Part shown: piece after piece, positions 53,230 to 56,200 of the stretch
How positions within the stretch are numbered: position 1 is the stretch's first letter
Layout: each line of letters begins with the position of its first letter
NCBI GenBank assembly: GCA_033442325.1
Contig: JAWQFM010000033.1
Location: 670,909-734,908, forward strand
Origin: Salpingoeca rosetta
Taxonomy: Eukaryota; Protista; Choanoflagellata
DNA: 64,000 nt
Reading direction: 5' to 3'
Notes under the pieces: model-generated
The model's database searches: none
The model's input: only the letters and a program-made list of their open reading frames with translations
Told to the model about the DNA's origin: nothing
Position numbers and translations under genes: made by a program

Positions 53230-56200
53230 TCACCGTTGAAGCGTTTGACGGCCTGTGTGTGTGTGTGTGTGTGTGTGTGTGCGTGTGTGTGTGCGTGTGT
53301 GTGTGTGTGTGTGTGTGTGTGTGTGTGTGTGTGTCATGTAAGGTGGGTGGGAACCGTGCTGCATTGACCACATGGCGCAAACAGGTGAAAAAGCACAGGC
53401 GAAACACGAACCTCCATCGTGTTTTGTCGCATGGTAGCGGGCCGTGTTGTCGAGGATGCACACGCCAGAGATATCAGCGGAAGTAGCTGCGTGTTCACAG
53501 AATGTTGTGAGTGGCAAGGGGAAAGAGCGGATGCAAACCACACTTGCAAGCAACACACACACACACACACACACACACACACACACACACACACACACAC
53601 ACACACAACACAACAACACACACACACACACACACACAAACACGCAAGCCCACCTGTTGATGTATGTGCAGTGGAATAAACCGTCTCTTCTGTGTCTCCG
53701 CGCGCTGTTTGAGATATTATATGACGGGAAATGAGAGCGTGCGTGCGTGCAAAAAAAAAAAACGGTGGCTGGAGTGATACGCCTTCCCCATCCGCAACAC
53801 CGCTTGCATCCACTACCACGACAAGTGTTTTGGTGCGGTGCATACCTGGAACAACATATTCGCCAGCAGCGTCCAGCCCTGAGAAAAGGAGTGAACAGCA
53901 CATGAGGTGTGAGCATGTGATGCGCCCGTTTCGAATGCACAGCGCAGCAGCAACAAGTGGGAGACGTCAGAATCGGCAGCCTTGTCACGCATCACCACAA
54001 ACACACCAGACAGCGACGCAGGTGTCATATCCGTGTACACCGGCTGCTCTTGGTTCACATCGGCAGTGCCGGCTGCGTGGTTGTGTGCGAGTGTGTGTAT
54101 GTGTGTATGTGTGTGTGTGTGTTTGGGGAGGGGTTGTTAGCTCACACACACACACACACACGCACACACGCACACACACACGTGCACACACAGACTCACG
54201 TATTGCGAAGCCCACGACTTCCTCTGCTTCGTCGTCGCCTTCAACTCCCTGTGAAACCTCGATATAGTTTCCATCCTCGTCGTCATCAGCGCAGTTCGCG
54301 GCGGTGGTGCGACTGGCACCTGCATGCAGTTGCTCGTAAATGAATGAGTGTGTGTGTGTGTGTGTGCGTGTGTGTGTGTGTGTGTGTGTGTACGAGTCAC
54401 TTCAGGCCAAGGCGTTCTCGTTCTCACCGAGTGTGTCATATTGGACGCTGTTGGTCTTCGCGGTGTGCGTGCGAGTGGGTAATCCTGAACATGAACACGA
54501 AAGGCGCACACACACACAAATGAATGCATGCGCATACACGCACATATCCACACCGGCGTGAGATTTGCACGAGTTGCCAGCAGCTTAGGGGTTGTGAGGG
54601 CACGCACCAGCACACGTGCGTACATCCACACACACACATACATACGTACAACCACATGCACGCACATACACACACATGTACAAACACACACATACACACA
54701 GCCCAACACGCGCGTGTGCACTGACGAAGCGTGTTGTAGTGTGGTTCTGCATCTGAGCTTGATTCATCGATCATGGCTTCTTGTCCCATCACGTCTGCAT
54801 TCCATGAGCGCAAGACAGTGCGTGCGTTACTCAGCAACGACATGCGCATCGCTGACATCGAGAGTGAAGGCGCGTGTTGACCTGCAACCGCACATCACAT
54901 ACACAGACACAGACACACAGGCACACATACACACACACTCACACAGCCATAGACACACACACAGACATAGACACACACATACACACACACAGACATGGTC
55001 TCACGTGTTGGCATGTACAGCGGATTGAAGTTCATGGTGATGGACGACTCTTCATACGCCGGGTTTCGCTCCAAACGGCAAACGCTCGATCCCACCACCC
55101 CTTCCGCTGCTGTTGGTGTAGTGGTCGTCGCTGCTGCTGTTGGTGATGGGGGCAATGTGTGCACCGTTGATTTGGCACCTGCCATGCGTCGACGAAGACC
55201 GATAACAACAGTGGTCTGCGAAGTAGGCGTGTGGGTGGGAAGGTGAAGTTGGAAGTATCAGTGAGGGTGTGGGTGCAAATTTGCATGGCTCGGTGTTGGT
55301 ATCATGTGTAGGTGCAGTCATGTGAGATTGTACACGTATGTGCATGCAGCAAGTGTGTGCATGTGTGCACGTGTGATTGTGCAACTGCACGTGTGCATGT
55401 GTGCATGTATGCACGTGTAAACGTGTATGCATGGGTGTGTGCCAGTGAAAAAGAGACAGGATTCACCAACGCACACAGGGTTGGCTTCTCACCACGATGC
55501 AAACGAAGGCCAAAGCTCCCGCTGTGCCAGCAATCACCGCAGCAGACTGTGACGACGACGATGACGATGATGAGGAGGGTGGCTGGGACGGGTAAGTGGT
55601 CATGTTTCCCACGCGGCTGAAGAGCACACGTGTGCCGTTGAGGGTGTGGAGGTTGCGCAGGCGGTCTCGAAGGAACTGCAAATCCCGCCATGCCGCCGAC
55701 ATTGCATTCATGCGAACGCCAACTTCAAAGAGCACCGATCCCGCAGATAAGCCAGTCTTACCGCTGCTGTTGATGCTTGCGTCACTGATGTCGCTGCTGG
55801 CGGCGGTGGTGGCGGGATCTGTGGCTGAAAGGATGACGGCGGTGTTGGCGTTGAGGTCCAACGTCTGCTCCAACTCACGCTCCAACATCTGCAATGGCGC
55901 GCGTGGACGCGTCTCCACCGCCACCACCAGCACCCGCCGCTTCCTCGCCGGAGGCACCAGCGGATCAATCACAAGCGTGATGCCAACAGCTTGCGTGTTC
56001 CCGCTGTTGTCGCGTGCGCGTATGCGAACCGGATGCGCACCGGGCACGTGTGTGTCGATGGGAGGCGAGGTCGGCAGCACAACGACGGCGAGTGACGACA
56101 CGTCACCGTCCACAGCATCAACGGCACGGATGTCCACGCGCACACGCCGTACCGCGTCGCTGCCAAACAGCACATGCACGCGTTGACCAGTCCGTGGCGT

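Follow-up and report, generated by a model that had tools for sequence, protein, structure and literature searches.

A candidate non-catalytic phosphotyrosine docking receptor of Salpingoeca rosetta with one tyrosine in each of seven phase-1 tail exons

We analyzed a window of 64,000 nucleotides (nt) from the choanoflagellate Salpingoeca rosetta (contig JAWQFM010000033.1, positions 670,909 to 734,908), in which the stretch under study, from position 53230 upward, is the 3' part of the minus-strand gene PTSG_10516, whose product is recorded as a hypothetical protein (XP_004988895.1). Judged from its sequence, PTSG_10516 would encode a non-catalytic phosphotyrosine docking receptor, a known kind of protein, with a tidy exon layout that appears only moderately beyond chance: two membrane-proximal NPxY motifs are followed by seven short exons, each bounded by phase-1 introns and each carrying a single tyrosine. 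The reading that we favor, with moderate confidence, is that of a docking receptor whose tail exons are spliced constitutively and in which the match between exons and motifs is a footprint of tail assembly or of even spacing.

An exhaustive protein search with the large exon of this stretch retrieved P0004, a protein of 970 residues that contains the exon, and a cluster look-up identified P0004 as XP_004988895.1 on supercontig GL832987.1. Mapped codon by codon on the window, P0004 fits exactly. The features of the region, in the order of transcription, are as follows.

56329 to 55493, minus strand: large exon with the HYR domain, the membrane-proximal stalk, a Ser-rich linker and the first two thirds of the membrane-spanning segment, ending ...AFVCIV (Pfam HYR, E = 1.5e-7; exact P0004 mapping).
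55492 to 55216, minus strand: phase-0 intron that splits the membrane-spanning segment (P0004 mapping; GT..AG kept in the paralog).
55215 to 55005, minus strand: NPxY exon, 211 nt, with the end of the membrane segment (TTVVIGL), an RRR stop-transfer signal, a Thr/Pro/Ala linker, NPAY and NPLY, ending in phase 1 (P0004 mapping).
55065 to 55054 and 55026 to 55015, minus strand: NPAY and NPLY, respectively, within the NPxY exon.
54881 to 54795, minus strand: 87-nt in-frame extension of tail exon 1 (acceptor 54881), an open frame without Tyr, probably intronic (word shares, explained below).
54794 to 54726, minus strand: tail exon 1 as annotated, 69 nt, phase 1-1, one Tyr (EPHYNTL) (P0004 mapping; word shares).
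54484 to 54428, minus strand: tail exon 2, 57 nt, phase 1-1, one Tyr (VQYDTL; by eye of the type [SIVL]xYxx[IVL] of the immunoreceptor tyrosine-based inhibitory motif, ITIM) (P0004 mapping).
54319 to 54200, minus strand: tail exon 3, 120 nt, phase 1-1, acidic, one Tyr (DGNYIEV) (P0004 mapping).
54072 to 54007, minus strand: tail exon 4, 66 nt, phase 1-1, one Tyr (PVYTDM, YxxM class), identical in the paralog (P0004 mapping).
53878 to 53846, minus strand: tail exon 5, 33 nt, phase 1-1, one Tyr (GEYVVP, YxxP class), with donor GT here and GC in the paralog (P0004 mapping).
53704 to 53654, minus strand: tail exon 6, 51 nt, phase 1-1, one Tyr (ETVYSTA) (P0004 mapping).
53486 to 53412, minus strand: tail exon 7, 75 nt, phase 1-1, one Tyr (ARYHAT), differing from its paralogous counterpart at 8 of 75 nt, more than any other tail exon (P0004 mapping).
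53252 to 53230, minus strand: terminal coding exon, (G)RQTLQR followed by TGA (P0004 mapping).

Every tail exon has an AG acceptor and, where internal, a GT donor. The intron phases of PTSG_10516 run 0, 2, 1, 1, 0, 0, 0 through the ectodomain and then eight times 1 through the tail, such that all introns after the 211-nt exon are in phase 1, and the frame closes at the TGA at 53232-53230. A preliminary description of this DNA had proposed seven exons with lengths that are multiples of three between phase-1 GT-AG introns, and the public model maps exactly onto this arrangement. The two agree at every exon but tail exon 1, for which the description had given 156 nt (acceptor 54881); in the annotation the exon measures 69 nt (acceptor 54794). 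Symmetry and tyrosine count are unaffected by this choice because both forms are multiples of three in phase 1. The same description had assigned the transmembrane segment to the exon with NPAY and NPLY; both motifs are indeed there, but exon 55215-55005 holds only the last third of the segment, the first two thirds lying in 56329-55493. Its count of exactly one tyrosine in each middle exon was confirmed, as all nine quoted motifs were located and the exon peptides checked.

The tail tyrosines are fairly evenly spaced, at 13 to 34 residues, and three exons end exactly at the third residue after the tyrosine (YNTL, YDTL, and YVVP). The proposal that any exon could be dropped in frame also held in silico: with C or G as the last base of every exon, no exon-exon combination yields a stop codon across the joined ends. 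Introns in the tail measure 108-241 nt. Most introns of PTSG_10516 consist largely of GT/CA microsatellite (53255-53335, 53555-53640, 54090-54200, 54340-54390, 54890-55000, and others). Two tail introns, 53705-53845 (141 nt) and 53253-53411 (159 nt), are multiples of three in length and have no in-frame stop; their retention would insert peptide rather than truncate the protein.

The predicted protein is a kinase-less type I receptor, as had been proposed. Pfam recognizes TNFR-type Cys-rich repeats (TNFR_c6; E = 1.4e-15 in P0004 and 9e-29 in P0154, the full-length paralog) and HYR domain(s) and nothing catalytic, and there is one hydrophobic membrane-spanning segment, at residues 719-745 of P0004, which is modeled as a helix. 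The claim that no catalytic domain follows the tail likewise stands: no kinase family is found in P0004 or P0154, no kinase or SH2 sequence occurs in the downstream minus-strand open reading frames (ORFs), which rules out a hidden downstream kinase or SH2 exon, and the next gene is convergent, its end lying at 53009, 221 nt beyond the PTSG_10516 stop. In an AlphaFold2 single-sequence model of residues 700-970, the membrane-spanning helix is the one confident helix and everything after it has a predicted local distance difference test score (pLDDT) below 50, consistent with a tail of ~220 residues that is predicted to be disordered. At the other end of the gene, the public model is cut short by an assembly gap (an N run at ~59430-59790) and begins with an internal Met at 59391. 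Farther upstream, an ORF that opens with the ATG at 60105 has a signal-peptide-like start and matches the N-terminus of the 1259-residue paralog, and the true full-length PTSG_10516 protein is probably ~1260 residues long.

By motif class the tail is a plausible phosphotyrosine docking region. Assigned by eye, VQYDTL is ITIM-like, YTDM belongs to the YxxM class, YVVP to the YxxP class, and YIEV is Src-like, in addition to the two NPxY motifs. In animals, non-catalytic membrane proteins such as transmembrane adaptors of the LAT/PAG type and NPxY-bearing engulfment receptors of the Draper/MEGF10/LRP1 type have tails that mix NPxY with YxxL-, YxxM-, and YxxP-type motifs and recruit PTB and SH2 proteins; PTSG_10516 would resemble them in its motif tail, not by homology. 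In the favored reading, PTSG_10516 encodes a type I membrane receptor without an enzymatic domain, and docking would be the most likely role of its tail. PTB-type or endocytic adaptors may use the two NPxY motifs near the membrane, and a partner receptor kinase or a Src-type kinase may phosphorylate the seven distal tyrosines in trans, whereupon they would bind SH2 proteins. The tail exons would be spliced constitutively, as in the public model, and the correspondence between exons and motifs would be a footprint of the way in which the tail was assembled, or of the even spacing of its tyrosines.

Matches that extend along most of the HYR-plus-stalk exon are found in three proteins: P0124 and P0074 of Microstomoeca roanoka, and P0066, from an environmental transcript. 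They resemble PTSG_10516 in the HYR domain, stalk, membrane segment, and a membrane-proximal NPxY after that segment (NPAY in P0124, NPIY/NPLY in P0074, and NPMY in P0066), whereas their distal tails are unrelated to that of PTSG_10516 in sequence and length; these relatives are known as transcripts only. P0066 (L003, ENA ERZ27288598 contig k119_538762) is encoded by an intron-free transcript and combines Ig-like/HYR-type repeats with the same stalk, membrane segment, and NPMY. Its tail holds 26 tyrosines, many of the YDVP/YDAL/YTTL type, followed by two C-terminal SH2 domains, making it a receptor that bears both docking sites and readers.

PTSG_10516 is a real, expressed gene. Ab initio models and expressed sequence tags were the starting material for the S. 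rosetta gene set, which was then refined with RNA-seq from eight conditions by means of PASA and Inchworm (PMC4054682). Across eight samples, PTSG_10516 reaches 144.1 (AtA), 0.49, 4.2, 3.6, 5.5, 10.2, 3.0, and 1.4 fragments per kilobase of transcript per million mapped reads, with an attached/colony log2 fold change of 3.6 (P = 7.5e-13; PMC4054682 Additional file S11). The paralog PTSG_10646 has the same profile in that file, and reads may cross-map between the copies. Both genes and the neighbor PTSG_10515 are present in Additional file S11, the caption of which refers to colony-upregulated genes and the columns to attached-versus-colony and attached-versus-swimmer comparisons (PMC4054682). 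Neither PTSG_10516 nor PTSG_10646 is named in the text of any indexed paper.

We also determined word shares, that is, the fraction of a region's 31-mers present in public sequencing runs, a measure that does not resolve splice junctions, for runs that are RNA-like or DNA-like. For 53200-56400, a share of 0.40 is expected from fully spliced mRNA and 0.31 if only the large and NPxY exons are transcribed; the observed shares were 0.27-0.46 in the RNA-like runs X4 to X11 and 0.61-0.71 in DNA-like runs. For 54710-55004, which covers the two forms of tail exon 1, the expectation is 0.147 with the 69-nt exon and 0.475 with the 156-nt exon, and we observed 0.14 in X4, 0.11 in X10, and 0.11 in X11, compared with 0.71-0.96 in DNA-like runs. 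The shares of 0.11-0.14 therefore favor the 69-nt exon, with most of intron 1 absent from the RNA-like contigs. Because this test comprises few words (28 sampled, approximately three of them microsatellite words that are also present in unrelated organisms), it is suggestive only, and on this footing the annotated 69-nt form is more likely than the 156-nt form. The 87-nt extension (54795-54881) is 100% identical in the paralog and does not discriminate between the two forms. Spliced junctions between the NPxY exon and exon 1 and between exon 4 and exon 5 had no match in two exact scans of metagenome contigs.

The paralog offers a natural comparison for the tail. PTSG_10646 (P0154; 1259 residues; GL832992.1, locus L001) shares 93% protein identity with PTSG_10516. 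The two loci form a segmental duplication with ~94% nucleotide identity (L001, GL832992.1:692890-707535, against window 52900-60105) that spans the receptor and its convergent neighbor, and both copies lie near the ends of ~740 kb supercontigs. In the locus alignment, which used pieces on either side of 54658-54701 (within the intron that follows tail exon 1), every tail exon is equal in length in both copies and free of indels. Indels are numerous in the introns; most of them fall in GT/CA microsatellites, which explain almost all of the length differences between the copies. PTSG_10646 retains the tyrosines of all seven exons and 15 of the 16 splice dinucleotides in the tail. The exception is the donor after the 33-nt GEYVVP exon, where GT has become GC (L001:10606-10611, equivalent to window 53845-53840). 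The public model of PTSG_10646 reads into the intron after exon 5 and stops there, dropping the last two tyrosine exons, the sequences of which are intact downstream. Read from the two loci, this truncated tail is a loss by mutation and not regulation, and it is the only natural variant seen. A segment of ~205 nt (53049-53253), flanked by CA/GT microsatellites and containing the last coding exon together with the beginning of the 3' untranslated region, has no counterpart in the paralog locus; there the microsatellite directly adjoins the stop codon of the neighboring gene.

To gauge how unusual the tail is, we set the phase-1 share of introns at ~0.3, an assumption rather than a value measured in this genome, under which eight phase-1 introns in a row have a probability of 0.3^8, or ~7e-5, per starting intron. 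Phase 0 is stated to be in general excess among introns (PMC8001218), and the S. rosetta genome contains 88,594 introns (PMC4054682, Table S1). Multiplied by ~7e-5, that number means that a few phase-1 runs of eight are possible by chance, and the present run was found post hoc. For the distribution of tyrosines, random placement within fixed exons gives one tyrosine per exon with P ~0.004; with fixed tyrosines and random exon boundaries, P is ~0.06 with the annotated exons and ~0.01 when tail exon 1 has 156 nt. The tail exon peptides show no mutual similarity beyond that of shuffled controls, and therefore recent tandem exon duplication does not explain the common phase; this source was ruled out, the matches among flanking DNA being GT microsatellites.

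Several observations weigh against a functional docking tail of this kind. The agreement of tyrosines with exons exceeds chance only modestly, in a post hoc test. The tail differs between the paralogs by 7 synonymous and 18 non-synonymous codons of 227, compared with 23 synonymous and 34 non-synonymous codons of 718 in the ectodomain, and thus appears to evolve almost neutrally; moreover, NPLY has become NPLH in PTSG_10646, with the loss of one NPxY tyrosine. Because of this near-neutral change and the lost tyrosine, constraint on the motifs is not demonstrated. A protein search with the P0004 tail alone (738-970) gave no match and no transcript-derived protein, and the full-protein search, limited to the tail region, returned only the protein's own cluster, with no relatives beyond the gene pair. 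High expression of PTSG_10516 is confined to one of three attached-cell samples (PMC4054682 Additional file S11), and the text supplements of the S. rosetta p38 paper (PMC11984502) list neither PTSG_10516 nor PTSG_10646.

One alternative is that the pattern is a coincidence without signaling meaning, in which case the tail would be a fast-evolving disordered spacer, its tyrosines would not be regulated docking sites, and the exon layout would reflect chance intron gain in a low-complexity region. The near-neutral divergence of the paralogs with its NPLH, the lack of tail relatives and of similarity among the exons, the value of P ~0.06 under random exon boundaries, and the size of the intron set, which permits a few such phase-1 runs (PMC4054682, Table S1), all speak for this view. 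Nevertheless, the seven exon tyrosines are all kept in the paralog despite the 18 non-synonymous changes elsewhere in the tail, a membrane-proximal NPxY recurs in another genus and in the environmental transcript that ends in two SH2 domains, and choanoflagellate receptor tails with Tyr motifs have been proven to act as kinase substrates and SH2 ligands (PMC3584944). We consider coincidence unlikely on balance. A gene-model artefact, in which the tail exons would be partly ab initio constructs through microsatellite-rich non-coding DNA and the transcript would end earlier (after exon 5, or with exon 7 unspliced), is highly improbable. It would account for the position of the terminal exon inside the 205-nt segment absent from the paralog, for a terminal acceptor directly after a (CA)n run, for the weak-looking exon-7 donor GTTCGT, and for a third-position GC content of 0.55 in the tail against 0.69 in the large exon, with a weaker codon-position bias. 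It is at odds with the word share of 0.46 in run X4 for 53200-56400, which exceeds the 0.31 expected from the large and NPxY exons alone, with exon lengths and frames that are all preserved in the paralog amid introns with many indels, and with an annotation refined by RNA-seq (PMC4054682).

The remaining alternative accepts the docking tail and differs in how it is spliced: the seven symmetric exons would be true cassettes, and regulated skipping or in-frame intron retention would edit the docking tyrosines across life stages. The layout would suit such a scheme, given that all seven exons are multiples of three bounded by phase 1 with no stop at any exon-exon junction, that YNTL, YDTL, and YVVP close their exons exactly at Tyr+3, and that introns 53845-53705 and 53411-53253 keep the frame without in-frame stops. 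Expression of PTSG_10516 is strongly condition-dependent, the GT-to-GC donor change after exon 5 accompanies an annotated paralog product without the last two tyrosines, and PECAM-1 shows that the principle works in animals (PMC2132561). On the other hand, the RNA-seq-refined annotation is a single model with all exons in, and introns of 108-241 nt favor intron definition, which speaks against exon skipping. A survey of 65 species found low exon skipping and no excess of events that are multiples of three in unicellular holozoans (PMC6142364), and the prior for cassette splicing is low because of this. We therefore regard true cassettes as quite unlikely, and prefer the docking receptor with constitutively spliced tail exons.

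PECAM-1 (CD31) is the nearest parallel to the exon layout. Its tail is encoded by exons 9-16, with five tyrosines in exons 9 and 12-15, and exons are lost in frame, such as the 19-residue exon 14, which yields isoforms without a particular tyrosine (PMC2132561). Like PTSG_10516, it is a kinase-less single-pass receptor with a tail built from a row of short exons and tyrosines in separate exons; unlike PTSG_10516, it has an ectodomain of Ig domains, and isoforms of it that differ in function have been documented (PMC2132561). Because P0004 and P0154 have no Ig-family Pfam match and the tail has no relatives beyond the paralog, PECAM-1 is to be read as an analogue only. Within choanoflagellates, the RTKB kinases of Monosiga brevicollis resemble PTSG_10516 in architecture, combining a TNFR-like Cys-rich region and HYR repeats with one membrane-spanning segment. 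In RTKB2 of this species, the disordered tail contains tyrosine repeats that undergo phosphorylation and to which a Src-family SH2 domain binds (PMC3584944); unlike RTKB2, PTSG_10516 lacks both a kinase domain and RM2 repeats, and its Tyr motifs are all different. An immunoreceptor tyrosine-based activation motif formed by tail exons 1 and 2 was rejected because the spacer from YNTL to YDTL is too long, at 15 residues compared with the 6-12 required.

Choanoflagellates have very large repertoires of tyrosine kinases, phosphatases, and SH2 proteins. To our knowledge, few substrates or docking proteins of the choanoflagellate tyrosine-kinase network have been described. PTSG_10516 and PTSG_10646 are concrete candidates for a non-catalytic receptor that feeds this phosphotyrosine network; they are strongly on in one attached-cell sample and share their ectodomain type with the RTKB kinases. 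The correspondence between exons and motifs also provides a cheap and clear test of whether signaling tails were edited at the level of exons before animals arose. If the exons were true cassettes, splicing-programmed phosphotyrosine docking of the PECAM-1 kind would predate animals. The principle itself is already known in animals, because mammalian PECAM-1 has the same layout together with isoforms (PMC2132561), and what would be new, if true, is its presence in a choanoflagellate. That a unicellular relative of animals sets its SH2 and PTB effectors for each life stage by in-frame removal of one-tyrosine exons, or by intron retention, we consider very unlikely. If the exons are constitutive, PTSG_10516 would still present a tidy intracellular docking tail composed of phase-1 modules; discussion of class 1-1 modules usually concerns extracellular domains (PMC8001218).

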